Source of the DNA: Thecamonas trahens ATCC 50062
Lineage: Eukaryota > Protista > Apusomonadida
Length of the DNA stretch: 64,000 nt
Direction: 5' to 3'
NCBI RefSeq assembly: GCF_000142905.1
Contig: NW_013657642.1
Coordinates: 290,551-354,550, forward strand
The notes beneath the pieces are model-generated. The model saw only the letters and a program-made list of their open reading frames with translations. It was not told the origin of the DNA and did no database searches. Positions 2,584-63,990 of this stretch are shown piece after piece. Positions within the stretch are counted from its first letter, which is position 1; each line of letters starts with the position of its first letter. The translations under genes were made by a program, and so were the position numbers.

Positions 2584-5500
2584 TTACTCGTTTGCCGGAC
2601 CAAAGCCGCCGCCGCCCGGCGTGTGGATGTGGATCTCGTCACCGACCTCACAGGTGAACGAGGCCTTGCCGCCGAGGTTGACCAAGCCGTCATCGCGGCC
2701 GCGCTTGAGGGTGTTGGTGCCGCGGGCGCCGTCGCTGCCGCCAGCCACGCCGCGTGGCGGCATTGCCCGGCGCTCAGAAAGCATCGAGACTGAGGTTTTC
2801 TTGAGGAACTTGACGACGCGGACGACGCCGTCGCCGCCACGGCGCGCGCCATCGCCGCCCGAGTTCGGGCGGAGCGAGAACTGCTTGAGCAGGACCGGGT
2901 AGCGGCGCTCCAGGATCTCCGGGTCAGTGATTCGGGTGTTGGTCATGTGGGTGTGGACGCCCGATGCGCCATCCCAGCTCGGCCCGGCGCCGGCGCCGCC
3001 GCAGATGGTCTCGTAGTAGCCGTAGGAGAACTCGGGCTCGACACCCGAGGTTGCGGCGTCGTCGCCAAAGGTAAAGTTGTTCATGTCGCCCTGCGAGCAT
3101 GCGGCGGCGCCAAAGGCCTGCAGCAGCACGTCGGTGACGCGTTGCGAAACGAGGACGTTACCGGCGACCACGGCAGCATCAGGCAGCGGCTCCAGCAGCG
3201 AGCCGTACGGAGTGATGACCTCCACGGGCTCGAGGCAGCCTTGGTTGAGCGGAATGTCCTCCGAGACCAACGAGCGGAGGACGTAGATGACTGCCGAGAG
3301 GGTGATGGCCCGCGGCGCGTTGGTGTTGCCCAGCGCCTGCGGCGAGGTGCCGGTAAAGTCAAAGACCGCCCGTCCGGTGGCGGCGTCAATCGAGAGCGCA
3401 AGCGCAATCTTCGCCCCGTCGTCCATGTAGTCGGTGGCGGTGAGGACGAGCGGCGAAGCGCCGGGGCTGGGATCGGCTCCGTGCTTAAGCGCCAGGCCAC
3501 GGAGCATGTCCGACACTGCCATGGCGGCCTTGGCCCGAATCCCATCCATGGCTGCCGTCACCTTGTCGAGCGAGGCCTTGCCGATGAGCTCCTGCATGAG
3601 CGTGATCCCCTTGTGATTCGCCGCAATCTGCGCCTTGAGATCGGTGAGGTTGTCGGCGAGCGCACGCGTGCCTGAGATGCCTGCCGCCGCTGCCTCGGCC
3701 GAGACGTTGCTCAGCACCGCTGTGATGCCGTCCTCCTGGAACTTGCCGCCGTCGACGAGCTTGAACGACTTGATAGCGGCACCCTCCTCGGCGAGAGACT
3801 TGGAAAACGGTGGCATCGAGCCCGGCGTGATGCCGCCGATGTCGGCGTGGTGCCCGCGCGACGCAACGTAGAACGCTGGCTTCTCGTTTCCACCTACAAA
3901 CACCGGAGTCATGACCGTGATGTCCGGCAGGTGCGAACCGCCGGCTGCCGGGTGGTTCGAGCACACCACGTCGCCCTCGCGCCAGGTGTCGCCGAGGGCC
4001 GAGATCTGGTACTTGACCGCCTCTTGCATCGAGCCGAGGTGGACAGGCACGTGCGGCGCGTTGGCCACCAGCCCGCCGTCGGGGCCAAACAGGGCGCATG
4101 AAAAGTCAAGCCGGTCCTTGATGTTGGTCGAGATCGAGGTCCGCTGCAGCGTCACTCCCATCTGCTCCGCAATCGACATGAACCGGTTGGCGTAGATGGA
4201 GAGCTCGATGGGCGAGACGTCAGCCGATGCGGCGGCGTCGGCGGCGCTGGCCGCTGCCGCCTTGCTCATCTGGACCTTGTGCAGGACGAGGTCGCCACCG
4301 TCGAGCGCGGTTGCCTCCCAAGATGGCTCAACCACAATGGTGGCGTTGTTGTCGATGATGAGCGCCGGGCCGGCAAGCTTGGCTCGCGAGTCGGCGAGCT
4401 TTTCCAGCTTGTACACCGGCGTCGTGACCCGGCCACCTGCCGACGCAAAGTAGGTATGGACGGTGGCCTCGGGTGAGCCCGGGGCCGTACCCGGGGCCGA
4501 CATCGGCTTGGCCTGTGACGCGGCCTGGACGGCTTTGGCCGCGTCCGAGAGGCCGACGGCGCGGACCCGGATGTCATCGACCAGGATGTCGCGGCCTTCG
4601 AGGACAAAGCCGTACTCTTGCTTGTACTGCGCGAGGAAGGCAGACTCAAAGGCGGCCGGCTCCATCGAGTCAGCGCGGATCATCAGCGCAGTGTCGGCGC
4701 CATCGAACCTGAGGTTGAGGTACGTCTCGCGGGTGAGCGCTTCGGGCTCAAAGCCGCGCTGGGCAAGCTGGGCAAGCGGATCGACGGCGACGGCGTCAAA
4801 CTTGGCAGCAAGGTCGGCGGCAGCGAGGTCGGCGAGCCGGACGGCGGCAGGCTCCTGTGCCTCGGCCACCATGGGCGCAAGGGCCATGCCGTAGGCCGAG
4901 AGCACGCCCGAGTGGCGGTGGATAAAGATGGAGGCCATGTCGAGCGAGTCGGCAATGGCGCACGCGTGCTGCCCGCCAGCGCCGCCAAAGACAGACAGAA
5001 TGTGGTCGGCGGTGGCGTAGCCCTTGGCCTCTGTGATGGAGCGGATCGGCCGGCACATGGCTTCGTTGGCAACCGCAAGGAAGCCCGCAGCAACCTCGTC
5101 GAGGCTCTGCACCTCGGGCGTCTCGCCCAGTGCCTCTGCCTCGCGGGCGAGGTCAGCGTTGATCTGGTTGGCGAGGGTCTCAAAGGCGACGGTTGTCGCC
5201 GCCAAATCGAGCGGCTCGGCTTCCGACTCACCAAAGATGGCAGGAAAGAAGGCTGGATCGAGTCGGCCGAGGAAGAGGTTGGCGTCAGTGACTGCGAGAT
5301 CGCCGCCCTTGCGGTAGCAGACCGGGCCCGGATGGGCACCAACAGACTCGGGCCCGACCTGGTACATGTAGTTGGAAAAGTGGAGCTTGGAGCCTCCGCC
5401 AGCGGCGACGGTGGTGATGTCCAGCTGCGGTGCCTGAGTGGTCACGCCGGCGGTCTCCGACTCGTAAACAAACTCAAAGGCGTTGTCAAAGCGAGAAACG

Positions 5501-59251: not shown

Positions 59252-59420
59252 GGGCCGGTGGCGTACATGGCGCCGGAGCAGCTGCGCGAAGCCGAAGAGG
59301 GTTTTGAGGGCGACATGTTCACCTTTGGCACGCTCCTCTACGAGATGCTCATGCGGGCGCCGGCGTTTGATGGCAGCAATGCCATGGAGATTGGCCGCCA
59401 GGTCCTCACCAGCAACGCTG
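59252..59420 (+). pseudogene. Protein kinase fragment (subdomains VIII-X only)
   Basis: GPVAYMAPEQL...GDMFTFGTLLYEML..APAFDG; no upstream Gly-loop, VAIK, HRD or DFG. Confidence 0.75.
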
Positions 59421-59559
59421 CTAGTGCGATGGCGGGTAATTCATCAAGCGGTGTTGGTCGGTCGATCCGCTGGTGAGGCCCATGGCGCAGGAGGCTGCGG
59501 ATGTGCCGGTGGCGGCGAGGATGCGGGCGTGGTGCTCGGGGGAGAAAAGGCGGTGGGTG

Positions 59560-62500
59560 TTATGGATGGCGGCGGAGGATGATGGGGGGGCAGTTGGAGA
59601 ATACGGTGAGGAGGCGATTGGGGTCGGAGGGGTGGGGGATGGAGAGGCCGGTGTGGTTGGCGATCGTGATGCGGGTCCAGTTGTTGCGTGAGTGGATGGG
59701 GATGGAGCGGCGGGCGTGGAACCAGAAAGAGGAAGGGTGGCGGGCGTGGAGGGTGTAGCCGGTGGGGGAGGGGTGCCACTCGAACGTCTCGTCGGAGTAT
59801 GAGCGGGAGACCAGGACAGGCAGCTGGCCATCCGCACTCGGCAGCGCAATCACACCCCGCACACTGTTGGTGTGGCCCTCCAGCACCTCACAGGAGGCAC
59901 CGTCGGCGGTGTACCGCATGGCGCCCGTCCCGTTGTCCGCAGGATGCCACACCCGGATCGTCTTGTGGTTCGACCACGAGACCAGGACAGGCAGCTGGCC
60001 ATCCGCACTCGGCAGCGCAATCACACCCCACACATACTTGGTGTGGCCCTCCAGCACCTCACAGAATGCACTGTCCGCGGTGTACCGCATGGCGCCCGTC
60101 CCGTTGTCCGCAGGATGCCACACCCGGATCGTCTTGTGGTTCGACCACGAGACCAGGACAGGCAGCTGGCCATCCGCACTCGGCAGCGCAATCACACCCC
60201 ACACATACTTGGTGTGGCCCTCCAGCACCTCACAGAATGCACTGTCCGCGGTGTACCGTATGGCGCCCGTCCCGTCGTCCGCAGCATGCCACACCCGGAT
60301 CGTCCTGTCCTTCGACCACGAGACCAGGACAGGCAGCTGGCCATCCGCACTCGGCAGCGCAATCACACCCTGCACATCGTCGGTGTGGCCCTCCAGCACC
60401 TCACAGGAGGCACCGTCGGCGGTGTACCGCATGGCGCCCGTCCCGTTGTCCGCAGGATGCCACACCCGGATCGTCTTGTGGTTCGACCACGAGACCAGGA
60501 CAGGCAGCTGGCCATCCGCACTCGGCAGCGCAATCACACCCCACACATACTTGGTGTGGCCCTCCAGCACCTCACAGGAGACACTGTCTGCGGTGTACCG
60601 CATGGCGCCCGTCCCGTTGTCCGCAAGATGCCACACCCGGATCGTCTTGTCCTCCGACCACGAGACCAGGACAGGCAGCTGGCCATCCATACTCGGCAGC
60701 GCAATCACACCCTCGCACATACTTGGTGTGGCCCTCCAGCANNNNNNNNNNNNNNNNNNNNNNNNNNNNNNNNNNNNNNNNNNNNNNNNNNNNNNNNNNN
60801 NNNNNNNNNNNNNNNNNNNNNNNNNNNNNNNNNNNNNNNNNNNNNNNNNNNNNNNNNNNNNNNNNNNNNNNNNNNNNNNNNNNNNNNNNNNNNNNNNNNN
60901 NNNNNNNNNNNNNNNNNNNNNNNNNNNNNNNNNNNNNNNNNNNNNNNNNNNNNNNNNNNNNNNNNNNNNNNNNNNNNNNNNNNNNNNNNNNNNNNNNNNN
61001 NNNNNNNNNNNNNNNNNNNNNNNNNNNNNNNNNNNNNNNNNNNNNNNNNNNNNNNNNNNNNNNNNNNNNNNNNNNNNNNNNNNNNNNNNNNNNNNNNNNN
61101 NNCGCGGTGTACCGCATGGCGCCCGTCCCGTCGTCCGCAGCATGCCACACACGGATCGTGTTGTCTCTCGACCACGAGACCAGGATGGGCAGCTGGCCAT
61201 CCGCACTCGGCAGCGCAATCACACCCTGCACATCGTTCGTGTGGCCCTCCAGCACCTCACAGGAGGCACTGTCCGCGGTGTACCGCATGGCACCCGTCCC
61301 GTCGTCCACAGCATGCCACACCCGGATCGTCTTGTGGTTCGACCACGAGACCAGGACAGGCAGCTGGCCATCCGCACTCGGCAGCGCAAACACACCCCGC
61401 ACCCTGCTGGTGTGGCCCTCCAGCACCTCCACGCGTTCACCAGTTAGCACGTCAAGTACGTCCACATTCTTCCGACATTCACCAGCAACCAGCGAGCCAC
61501 CGATGTTGATGACTTTTTCGTACGAGCCATCAAAGCGAAAGCGCTCAGCACCACGATGCGCGAAAAGGGTCCACGGCTCTCGATGGAAAAAGAGCCCCAA
61601 ACGAGGCATCTTCGCTCACAGCAGCAACCATGTCCTTCACGGCTTTGGACGCCTTGACATAGGCAAGTCAAAGCAACAAGCTCGGTCTCGATGTGCGACG
61701 TACCGCTCTCAATGATTTCACGTGAGAGCGACAGCGCACGCTCGACCTCGTCAACGTCTTTGGCTCCTTCACAGCCAAGGCGCACAACACAACGCAGATC
61801 ATGGAGGAGGCCACCAAGCGAGTCGTCTGCGCGGGCTTTCATCCACGGCCAGGAGAGAGCAACGGCAACGGCAGCATGGTTTGCTCCAGCTGCAATCTTT
61901 CAAAATACCGCGGGTGACGATCCAATCGGAGGCAGTGCCAGAGGTCATGGTCTCCATAGCGGACTCTGGCGTGGCGCCAGGCGGAGGCACCCCGGCGACA
62001 ACGGCGAGGTGACGGGCAGGAAGGGAAGGGATGTCGTCAACGCACACCTCAAGCCGATGGCGAATGTACTCGAGGTGCAGATCGTGCAGCTCGACTACGG
62101 TTATGGCGCCGCCATCCGTGGCAACGACGCGCAGCAACGACGTGTTGGCGAGGGCATCGAGGGCCCTAGCAAACTTGATATTGCTTGCGTCGATCGCGGA
62201 GCGGAAGTTGGCGACGTCGATGGGCGCGTCTGATGGAAAGACGGCGAGCATGGCGTAAATAGTCAGCGCCACCTTGCGGACATGCTTGGGGATGGCACCG
62301 CCGAGGGTCCAAGTGATGATGTCAAAGATGTGGGCGTACTTGGCGTCCGATCCGCCGCAATCATCGCGGTGCTCATCCATGGCAAACTCGGTTGCATCTG
62401 CAGCGTCCTCAACAGCGTCGTCAAGTGCAGCCTCGCCAGAAATGGACGAGCCAAGGACGGCGAGGGCGAGGGCATGCCCACGGCAAAAGGTCGCGAGGGA

Positions 62501-63990
62501 GACGATGCGGGGATCGTCGAGAGCAAGGGTGTTTGCCCACTCAGGTGAGCCCTTGGCGAGGTAGTTGCGAAGGACAACAGCAGCGTCGTCCGGGCCAAAG
62601 GTGCCAAGCTTGATGGAGGAGGCGGTTGTTGGTAGCAACAGCGGCGTTACGCGAGGTGACGAGGACGGCATGCGGGCTGCGATGTGTTGGTGAAGACGGA
62701 GGCCTGCGGTGGTCCACGCATCGTCGAGATGAGCAAGATGCGAGTGCGGCATTGGCGAGGGCCCGGGTCTTGGCAGCAAGAATGGGTTGGAGGTCATTGA
62801 GGCCAGCTTGTGCATCGATTNNNNNNNNNNNNNNNNNNNNNNNNNNNNNNNNNNNNNNNNNNNNNNNNNNNNNNNNNNNNNNNNNNNNNNNNNNNNNNNN
62901 NNNNNNNNNNNNNNNNNNNNTCAGGAAGTAGAACATGCGGCTAGCAAGATCGGCGTGGACGTATGTCCTCACCAAGAGGGAGCCAGAAGACGGAGAAGGC
63001 GGAGATGATGGCGGGATGGATGGCGACATCGGCAGCGAGTGACGACTTGCCGACGCCACCGAGCCCGTTGACACCAACGACTGAGACGTTGTTCGCACCG
63101 AGAAGGACATTAATGACCGCATCACGAGTGTCAGGGAGCGGGTGGAACTCGGGTGGATTGAGTGGCGGTGGCATGGGTGAGGGGCGGAGGGGTGAACTGG
63201 GAACAATGGCCTGGATGCGGTCGGCAAGATCGTCGACCATGTCAACCACGCTGTCGCGAGCCGGGGAGTATGGAGCGAGGCCGCGCTCGAGGAGGGCGTA
63301 GAGAGTGCCGATGCGGGCGACTTTGAGGTCGGGCGTGAGTTCATCGTGTTCCCAGAGATCCGTGAAGCGACGGTTGTCCGGGATCTGCGACGGGAAAGCC
63401 GCCGCCATGTACGCCAGTAGAGGGTGGCTGGCATCCCGCGGGCCGTCACGCCATGCCGGCGACGAGACGGTCTCGAGCGAGAGCTCAGCGTCGGCAAAAA
63501 CCGGAAAGACCTTGCAAGTCGGATCAGCGAGGGCTGCGTCGGCCTCTGCGATGGCCCACCGTGTGACGATCGAGTACTTTGAGACAACGACGACCACAAC
63601 GTGTGAGTCACGGGCAAGCCGGGCGCAGTCTGCGGGATCTTGGACAATCATGGCGTCGAGCGACTTGACGTCGAGAAAGACGCGTAGACCGAGGGCAACG
63701 AGCTTGTCGCGGAGCGAGAGCATGAGCCCCTTGTCGTTGGAGCCGTGGCAGAGGAAGACATCGTATGACTTGGTGGGGATCTGGCTGGTAGTGGAGGACG
63801 GCCCGGCTGGTGACGATGACGTCGCTTCGATATGAATGTTCTGGGGGACTGCGGAGGAAGGGGTGGTCGAGCTGGCCGAGCTGGCGCTGGAAGTGCGCTC
63901 GACTCGCCCGGGGTCGGCCGGTTGCCCTGCGCGGCGCTTGGCAGAACTACCAGCGGCATACTCCGAACCGCCCCCTGGGGCGGGGTCCAT
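59560..63990 (-). CDS. TIR-NB-ARC (STAND)-WD40 NLR/Apaf-1-like protein; several frameshifts and two gaps in this assembly; may extend beyond the window
   Basis: TIR (YDVFLCH, RVFLD, VVVVVSKY, RWAIAE), Walker A GLGGVGKS, Walker B LDDAW, sensor LVTSR, CRGHALAL (GLPL-like), LHDL (MHD-like), then WD repeats LEGHT..V.GV...TIRVW. Confidence 0.88.
59809..61430 (-). repeat. 171-bp (57-aa) highly conserved WD40 tandem array; 8 units visible, about 2 more in the gap
   Basis: An anchor sequence recurs at 59810, 59981, 60152, 60323, 60494, 60665, 61179 and 61350. Confidence 0.96.
60742..61102. other. Assembly gap inside the WD array
   Basis: N run. Confidence 1.
62821..62920. other. Assembly gap (100 N, size unknown) inside the NB-ARC region
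   Basis: N run. Confidence 1.

Follow-up and report, generated by a model that had tools for sequence, protein, structure and literature searches.

Analysing a stretch of 64,000 nucleotides from Thecamonas trahens ATCC 50062 (C38:290551-354550 of an assembly of 28.7 Mb; the whole stretch is called the window below), we found on its minus strand a copy of a TIR-NB-ARC-WD40 gene of NLR-like type (59560..63990), whose tandem array of almost identical WD40 repeats is probably the ligand-sensor part of a member of a larger gene family, subject to concerted evolution as well as to diversifying selection on the top face of the propeller. We infer that this face binds the ligand, that binding switches the NB-ARC module and the TIR effector and that the system serves immunity or non-self recognition. 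Arrays of near-identical sensor repeats that differ at a few hypervariable surface positions are characteristic of fungal genes for non-self recognition and are also seen in some bacteria; T. trahens is an apusomonad, a free-living flagellate near the animal/fungal root. The T. trahens family is a new protist example of this known receptor design, and a literature search returned no paper linking Thecamonas to NLR, TIR, NB-ARC, WD40 or Apaf-1.

Repeat units, hypervariable codons and the shared pool

The domain composition was established with the help of an intact paralog on scaffold C59 (L034:1629-6488), which is one open frame of 1670 codons and matches the Pfam families TIR_2 (37 bits, cut-off 28), NB-ARC (PF00931; 52.1 bits, cut-off 23.5) and WD40 (PF00400; 153.2 bits, cut-off 27). 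Used as tblastn query, it covers the window on the minus strand from 63999 to 59758, with the frame switching repeatedly; the gene, which contains two runs of N, lies at 63990→59560. A window piece (window:62965-63990:-) reaches 39.3 bits with TIR_2 and another (window:59560-60711:-) 69.3 bits with WD40. The order on the minus strand, TIR followed by NB-ARC and WD40, is the tripartite layout of NLR proteins; for NACHT and HET no Pfam match was obtained at E <= 0.01.

Tandem Repeats Finder detected a period of 171 bp at 59807-60741 (5.5 copies with 94% matches, free of insertions and deletions, or indels) and again at 61103-61429 (1.9 copies, 89% matches). On the minus strand each unit encodes 57 residues, LEGHT-xx-V-x-GVIALPSADGQLPVLVSWS-xDx-TIRVWH-x-ADDGTGAMRYTAD-xx-SCEV, and read in order the window units carry SRVR, NDVQ, KYV., KYVW, DDVQ, KYVW, KYVW and NSVR in the first variable patch and NHK, RDN, EDK, NHK, KDR, NHK and NHK in the second. 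A previous inspection of the letters alone (the sequence-only reading) had listed these 171-bp near-identical units and their patch variants, all of which were recovered by Tandem Repeats Finder and minus-strand translation, so that what was noticed is real and well above chance; it had also described the unit as exceeding a standard blade by an inserted loop, and alignment to the canonical 42-residue WD40 repeat indeed resolves the 57 residues into 42 plus 15 extra ones, 4 of which lengthen the A-B loop and 11 the C-D connection. Complete window units, five in number, share 91-100% of their DNA (mean 94%) and 81-100% of their protein sequence; the class of NLRs with high internal repeat conservation is defined by a protein identity of the repeats above 85% across 100 residues or more (Dyrka 2014, PMC4986451), and the window units, with a mean of 87.9% over 285 residues, belong among them. 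Two non-adjacent complete units, at 60397-60567 and 59884-60054 (both KYVW/NHK), are 100% identical, and a third (60055-60225, KYVW/NHK) agrees with both in its first 114 nt and with its neighbour in its last third; the other member of this row of four complete in-frame units lies at 60226-60396 (DDVQ/KDR).

Looking for the unit elsewhere in the genome, a 342-bp query gave 104 DNA matches at about 18 loci. From the family loci, 114 ungapped units of 171 nt were extracted, none with a stop codon; array size ranges from ~7 to 16 units between paralogs, two of which (1456 and 1670 codons) are open throughout and free of N. Public T. trahens paralog proteins are XP_013758056, XP_013753735 and XP_013758908, from scaffolds C22, C57 and C17. 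The small scaffolds C101 (L046) and C123 (L033) carry units identical to those of C97 (L038) and C73 (L037) and are probably redundant or haplotype copies; about 18 is therefore an upper estimate of the number of distinct loci. Outside T. trahens, a HMMER scan of 1.84 billion representatives did not recover the 57-residue unit, which was found only in proteins of this species (73-83% identity).

Diversity is concentrated at five codons of the unit (counted from the high coordinate of each unit). Among 106 distinct unit sequences, entropy amounts to 2.5-3.2 bits at codons 6, 7, 9, 29 and 31; elsewhere the highest value is 1.8 bits (codon 52) and most lie below 0.8. Expressed as amino-acid identity of 110 intact units, the five codons reach 16% and the others 88%, the family-wide mean of the units being 82%. 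The proportion of nonsynonymous differences (pN) is 0.56 at the five codons and the proportion of synonymous differences (pS) 0.079 at the remaining ones, a ratio of 7.1 (95% confidence interval from a bootstrap over loci 5.6–9.0); within the window alone the corresponding values are 0.355 and 0.039. The remaining codons are under moderate constraint (pN/pS 0.5-0.7). A parsimony count on a FastTree tree, which is approximate as it takes no account of recombination among units, gives the five codons ratios of the nonsynonymous rate (dN) to the mean synonymous rate (dS) that range from 4.5 to 9.7 (p 1e-14 to 1e-56). The per-site comparison of aligned units thus bears out the diversification that the sequence-only reading had suspected, and by rates as well as positions the array belongs to the class with positive selection at predicted binding-surface positions. 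V8 and D30, enclosed by the variable pairs 7/9 and 29/31, are conserved. In the last full window unit the five codons lie at 60037-60039, 60034-60036, 60028-60030, 59968-59970 and 59962-59964. Mutagenesis of the type exerted by diversity-generating retroelements was considered and dropped, since all three codon positions vary, with many base changes; a reverse transcriptase was neither sought nor seen nearby. Besides the five codons, a weaker variable patch is formed by codons 38, 52 and 53 (59941-59943, 59899-59901 and 59896-59898 in the last full unit; dN/mean dS 2.7-3.8).

For the WD region of the C59 paralog, which is 841 residues long, AlphaFold2 was run with a shallow alignment and gave a model with a pLDDT of 68. 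In each modelled unit strands A to D are formed (8-14, 23-28, 32-36 and 55-2'), together with an extra small hairpin (38-40 and 46-48), and H4, D30 and W36 are nearly invariant, which is the signature of a WD40 blade (GH ahead of strand A, an Asp in the B-C turn, a Trp closing strand C). By these strand limits, the D-A loop contains codons 6 and 7 and the B-C turn codons 29 and 31, one on either side of D30, and codon 9 belongs to the beginning of strand A. In WD40 propellers both of these connections belong to the top face, and the five variable codons are predicted, from this topology, to lie there; the codons of the d-a loop and b-c turn of HET-E were likewise placed on top of the propeller (Paoletti 2007, PMC1805685). 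The weaker patch 38/52/53 is found at the foot of the inserted hairpin and not on the top face; it could serve as another contact surface, or be a region of relaxed constraint peculiar to the long blade. The solved 42-residue repeat 6R60 can be aligned with V8-W9-G10 on V8-W9-G10 and with S28-x-x-x-T32 on S24-D-D-K-T28. According to VIA-align, WD40 propellers of seven or eight blades fit model residues 6-395 and 389-790 (Z 22-23), and the intact paralog is predicted to have 14 blades arranged as two seven-bladed propellers; the top Foldseek match is 2YMU, a highly repetitive Nostoc propeller.

Concerted evolution, which the sequence-only reading had proposed for the window array, is supported, but it is family-wide and not confined to this array. 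With the variable codons excluded, units of one locus are separated by a nucleotide distance of 0.059 and units of different loci by 0.064, and the nearest neighbour belongs to the same locus for only 34 of the 114 units. The NB-ARC and linker parts of eight paralogs display a structured pairwise dS of 0.04-0.28 with two groups, whereas unit pS is flat, averaging 0.068 between loci (range 0.04-0.10) against 0.066 within them, and uncorrelated with the NB-ARC matrix (Mantel r = -0.02); even the close paralogs on C59, C64 and C22 (NB-ARC dS 0.04-0.065) have no units in common by position. As unit divergence is flat and does not track that of NB-ARC, the units behave as one shared, exchanging pool. 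Gene identity is mosaic, too, the TIR part of the window copy being 98.9% identical to C49 and its NB-ARC part closest (96%) to C64, C59 and C22. Identical units or blocks recur inside arrays, which to judge from their sequences contain recent whole-unit duplications. The 110 intact units comprise 61 amino-acid variants of patch 1 and 39 of patch 2 in 96 distinct combinations, and 26 of the 31 recurrent patch-1 types occur with more than one patch 2; this re-assortment fits recombination, to which independent mutation could also contribute. The turnover and exchange of repeats postulated previously are accordingly seen in a mixed pool, in whole-unit duplications, in missing positional correspondence and in re-assorting patches.

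A divergent paralog on C17 (L047:2021-5833; 85% nucleotide identity in NB-ARC) contains four full units that are 67-85% alike and stands outside the shared pool; it is a natural outgroup, showing an array without homogenisation. Its units differ from those of the pool by a pS of 0.32-0.36, close to its NB-ARC dS, and all pool units must therefore have coalesced after the split from C17.

We propose that each 57-residue unit would fold as a WD40 blade whose A-B loop is lengthened and whose strands C and D are separated by an additional hairpin, and that the blades of about 15-18 loci would form one pool, held at ~90% identity in DNA by duplication and deletion of whole units and by exchange within and between loci, with diversifying selection keeping the five codons of the two top-face loops highly diverse. 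Shuffling of blades and patches could then create many binding surfaces on a constant scaffold, the recognition specificity previously ascribed to the patches would reside in these surfaces, and a ligand bound on the top face would act through the NB-ARC switch on the TIR effector. A much bolder extension, which we consider unlikely, is that T. trahens stores upwards of 150 exchangeable blades, those of frame-broken copies included, at the ends of its chromosomes as an archive from which ectopic recombination moves blades and patches into expressed receptors; if this were true, a single-celled eukaryote would diversify its innate receptor repertoire quickly, perhaps between clonal lineages, in a manner resembling the antigen-gene archives of parasites or the assembly of lamprey VLR genes.

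Comparison with known receptor systems

The closest parallel in terms of evolution is provided by the NWD genes of Podospora, including HET-E, HET-D and HET-R, which like the Thecamonas family are of the STAND/NLR type with a C-terminal array of near-identical WD40 repeats. In HET-E, the selected codons 7, 9, 25 and 27 flank the conserved positions 8 and 26 in the d-a loop and b-c turn (PMC1805685); in the canonical register the Thecamonas pairs 7/9 and 29/31 correspond to 7/9 and 25/27 and are therefore the four HET-E codons, a numbering match which rests on Paoletti 2007 naming 8 and 26 as consensus positions. The equivalence to HET-E assumed by the sequence-only reading is hereby upheld, the pairs around V8 and D30 falling into the same loops in the model and in the 42-residue alignment. 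For the Podospora NWD family, concerted evolution within and between loci, four selected codons on the top face and pseudogenes with intact repeats have been described (PMC1805685, PMC2873952), and both families have in common concerted units, selected codon pairs around a conserved V and D, variable unit number and frame-broken members with intact units, as well as predicted double propellers (PMC12222747). The differences concern the modules (NB-ARC and TIR in Thecamonas, NACHT and HET in Podospora), the length of the unit (57 against 42 residues), the fifth strongly variable codon (6) and the weaker patch 38, 52 and 53, and the organisms themselves, an apusomonad flagellate with loci at scaffold ends and a fungus. 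Having NB-ARC and TIR instead of NACHT and HET, the window gene resembles the HNWD family, but stands outside of it.

The mechanism also agrees with what has been reported for recently amplified, often disrupted propellers on STAND proteins (PMC9218822). Among solved structures, the best match in structure and sequence is WRAP from Nostoc punctiforme (PDB 2YMU, 6R5Y-6R60; Dunin-Horkawicz 2014, as cited in PMC9218822). WRAP has 14 near-identical blades folded into two seven-bladed propellers on a STAND ATPase, is linked to a TIR protein and has relatives that are often frame-broken; it differs in being bacterial, in its 42-residue units and in having TIR on a separate protein. Its blades are almost variation-free, and the pattern of hypervariable sites is therefore not a hallmark of WRAP. 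Apaf-1 shares the NB-ARC switch and a sensor made of a double WD40 propeller (3SHF, Z 19.7), but has CARD instead of TIR and diverged blades; the plant TIR-NB-ARC-LRR proteins share the NB-ARC switch and the N-terminal TIR effector, but sense by means of leucine-rich repeats (LRR).

Beyond T. trahens, the next match in the HMMER scan (48% identity) is KAJ8612657, a NACHT-type protein of the alga Chrysophaeum taylorii, most other matches consisting of 42-residue units. This nearest relative of the unit shares the GH-xx-V-x and S-x-D-x-T pattern, but differs in its NACHT-type N-terminal region and in its 47-residue units, which are devoid of the DDGTGAMRYTAD insertion. An array in a JGI metagenome has units reaching ~57 residues by an insertion in a different loop, and GH-xx-V-x and S-x-D-x-T vary there as well. 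The design of near-identical blades varying at the same sites is widespread outside fungi. Its occurrence in an apusomonad suggests that this route to receptor diversity is either old or has been reinvented repeatedly across eukaryotes. The apusomonad version combines a TIR–NB-ARC chassis and a lengthened blade with copies clustered at scaffold ends, and T. trahens, being small and culturable, lends itself to studies of repeat exchange, of polymorphism between strains and of ligands.

Alternative explanations

Several points weigh against the interpretation of the array as the diversified sensor of a receptor family and call for caution. A single genome was examined, and as a draft assembly with N runs inside many arrays it leaves the order and number of units uncertain; arrays of this kind are often mis-assembled (PMC12222747). 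The confidence of the structural model is moderate and exposure of the variable residues follows from topology, the tree-based count is blind to recombination, and the frame of the window copy itself is interrupted within the NB-ARC module, within the linker and within one WD unit. It could be argued that the family is merely young, genes and arrays having been copied recently as whole segments without continuing exchange of units; non-repeat parts of the paralogs and the ~300 bp 3' of the stop are 86-99% identical in DNA, and some arrays (for example, C79 and C22) are partly collinear. We nevertheless regard this as unlikely: paralogs with an NB-ARC dS of 0.04-0.065 differ in their units by a pS of 0.07-0.08 and have no unit in the same position, those with an NB-ARC dS of 0.17-0.21 show the same unit pS, divergence within arrays equals that between arrays, the pool units coalesce after the split from C17, whose own units are diverged, and the TIR and NB-ARC parts of the mosaic gene are closest to different paralogs. 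It is very unlikely, in our opinion, that the variable codons represent relaxed loops or mutational hot spots; they do sit in loops, and constraint on the remaining codons is only moderate, but neutral sites cannot surpass the synonymous rate, which the five codons exceed 4.5- to 10-fold. Moreover, the intervening V8 and D30 have remained conserved, the codon lists show variation at each of the three codon positions and among many residue types but no single-base bias, and the same positions vary in unrelated arrays of a stramenopile alga and of a metagenome, as well as in Podospora. Assembly artefacts, by which reads of similar arrays would have been merged into chimeric or falsely identical units, find some support in the N runs within seven arrays, in the frameshift 30 bases from a gap edge, in the units of C97 and C73 being repeated on C101 and C123, and in the unreliability of short-read assemblies of comparable fungal arrays (PMC12222747). 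As an explanation of the pattern they are very improbable; mis-assembly alters the order or number of units but cannot produce codon-specific amino-acid diversity; the same five variable codons on the same scaffold recur in 114 units from 18 scaffolds without a stop codon, and the two N-free paralogs are uninterrupted.

The question remains whether the window copy, in distinction from the family, is functional. Whether it is a decayed copy still taking part in the exchange of units or an intact gene in poor draft sequence is close to evenly balanced, and we give slightly less than an even chance to its being a dead pseudogene in a duplicated block near the scaffold end, at most a passive donor of units. 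In comparison to two intact paralogs it contains at least 11 frameshifting indels, one of them in the Walker B region; pseudogene members in Podospora keep intact repeats by exchange with active loci (PMC1805685), and disrupted repetitive propellers are common in bacteria (PMC9218822). On the other hand, several of the indels consist of a single base missing from a CC, GG or CCCC run near the N runs (others adjoin substitutions), they cluster by the N runs within a 1.7-kb piece between the two gaps, as is typical of weak draft sequence, and no in-frame stop is present in the units. Being frameshifted as assembled, the copy may not be a working receptor but a donor of units or a pseudogene.

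Modules, gap and genomic setting of the window copy

The TIR domain of the window copy occupies 63481..63759 on the minus strand (Pfam TIR_2, PF13676, residues 78-170 of the piece that reaches 39.3 bits). A frameshifting indel near 62962 was found by nucleotide alignment with two intact paralogs. The NB-ARC nucleotide-binding module extends over 61904..63126 (minus strand), as delimited by the Pfam start at residues 289-334, by translation of the open reading frames and by the contexts of the indels. Its P-loop, GVNGLGGVGKS, is intact; an N run at 62821-62920 splits the module, and because the domain is cut by this gap, the window fragment alone scores slightly below the cut-off (22.4 bits). 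Walker B and the downstream motifs are interrupted: single-base deletions lie near 62748, 62729 (inside the LLILDDAW region), 62708, 62687 and 62677, and an insertion near 62627. The linker and the non-repeat first blade (…FRFDGSYEKVINIGGSLVAGECRKNVDVLDV…; 61431..61903, minus strand; translation and strands 16-47 of the paralog model) contain indels near 61899, 61672 and 61566. Downstream of the array follows a C-terminal tail (59560..59806, minus strand), composed according to the paralog alignment of a last divergent blade (…ETFEWHPSPTGY…), a segment predicted to be disordered, and IILRRHP with the stop codon; it is 81-93% identical in nucleotides to 12 paralogs and 73% to the divergent C17 copy, and the last 56 residues of the paralog model have a pLDDT below 50.

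The array itself begins with a full-length unit at 61253..61423 (SRVR/NHK; 92.4% in blastn against the reference unit, confirmed by translation), followed by the first 149-150 nt of a second unit (NDVQ/RDN; 61103..61252), which enters an N run of 361 bases (60742..61102). The unit after the gap (KYV./EDK; 60568..60741, a match of 172 nt with one gap) switches frame: an insertion of one base at ~60712, 30 bases from the gap edge and counted among the indels above, reads cccTCGcaca in place of ccccacaca elsewhere. After the four complete in-frame units described above, the array closes with a partial unit of 77 nt (NSVR; 59807..59883), an offset of the array end that is common to 12 loci; all of these units are on the minus strand. 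The flanks of the 361-base run end at unit offsets with 19 bases missing between them, and as 361 = 19 + 2×171, the 171 register and the frame are kept over the gap at its nominal length, which would comprise the end of unit 2 and two further units; the open frame from 61609 passes through the N run into LEGHTKYV. The six N runs in family arrays whose length is not the default of 100 (109, 111, 173, 221, 361 and 370) all keep the 171-nt register exactly (window 60742-61102; L035:4119-4227 and 4989-5099; L038:3138-3507; L040:8798-8970; L046:5898-6118), in contrast to the four runs of 100, none of which does so, and gap lengths other than 100 are therefore meaningful modulo 171. How many whole units the gap at 60742-61102 hides is uncertain.

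The loci bearing the unit (L031-L049) are nearly all situated 0-16 kb from the end of a scaffold, which the gene faces with its 5' end. The position of the family is likely subtelomeric, although a TTAGGG run is absent from every locus fetched; telomeric TTAGGG is present on C1 and C2 of the assembly. Distal to the gene, in C38:354000-356648 (L050), an element of 0.9 kb (L050:1719-2649) occurs at 31 places with the same bias in position and orientation. At the other side, ~300 bp 3' of the stop codon (window 59256-59559) are 82-96% identical in most other loci carrying this stretch, and the duplicated block therefore reaches past the gene. The annotated protein of the C70 locus (L031; 2359 residues) continues after the WD array with TIR-like and P-loop modules and may be either a fusion of gene models or a real giant protein of multiple modules.

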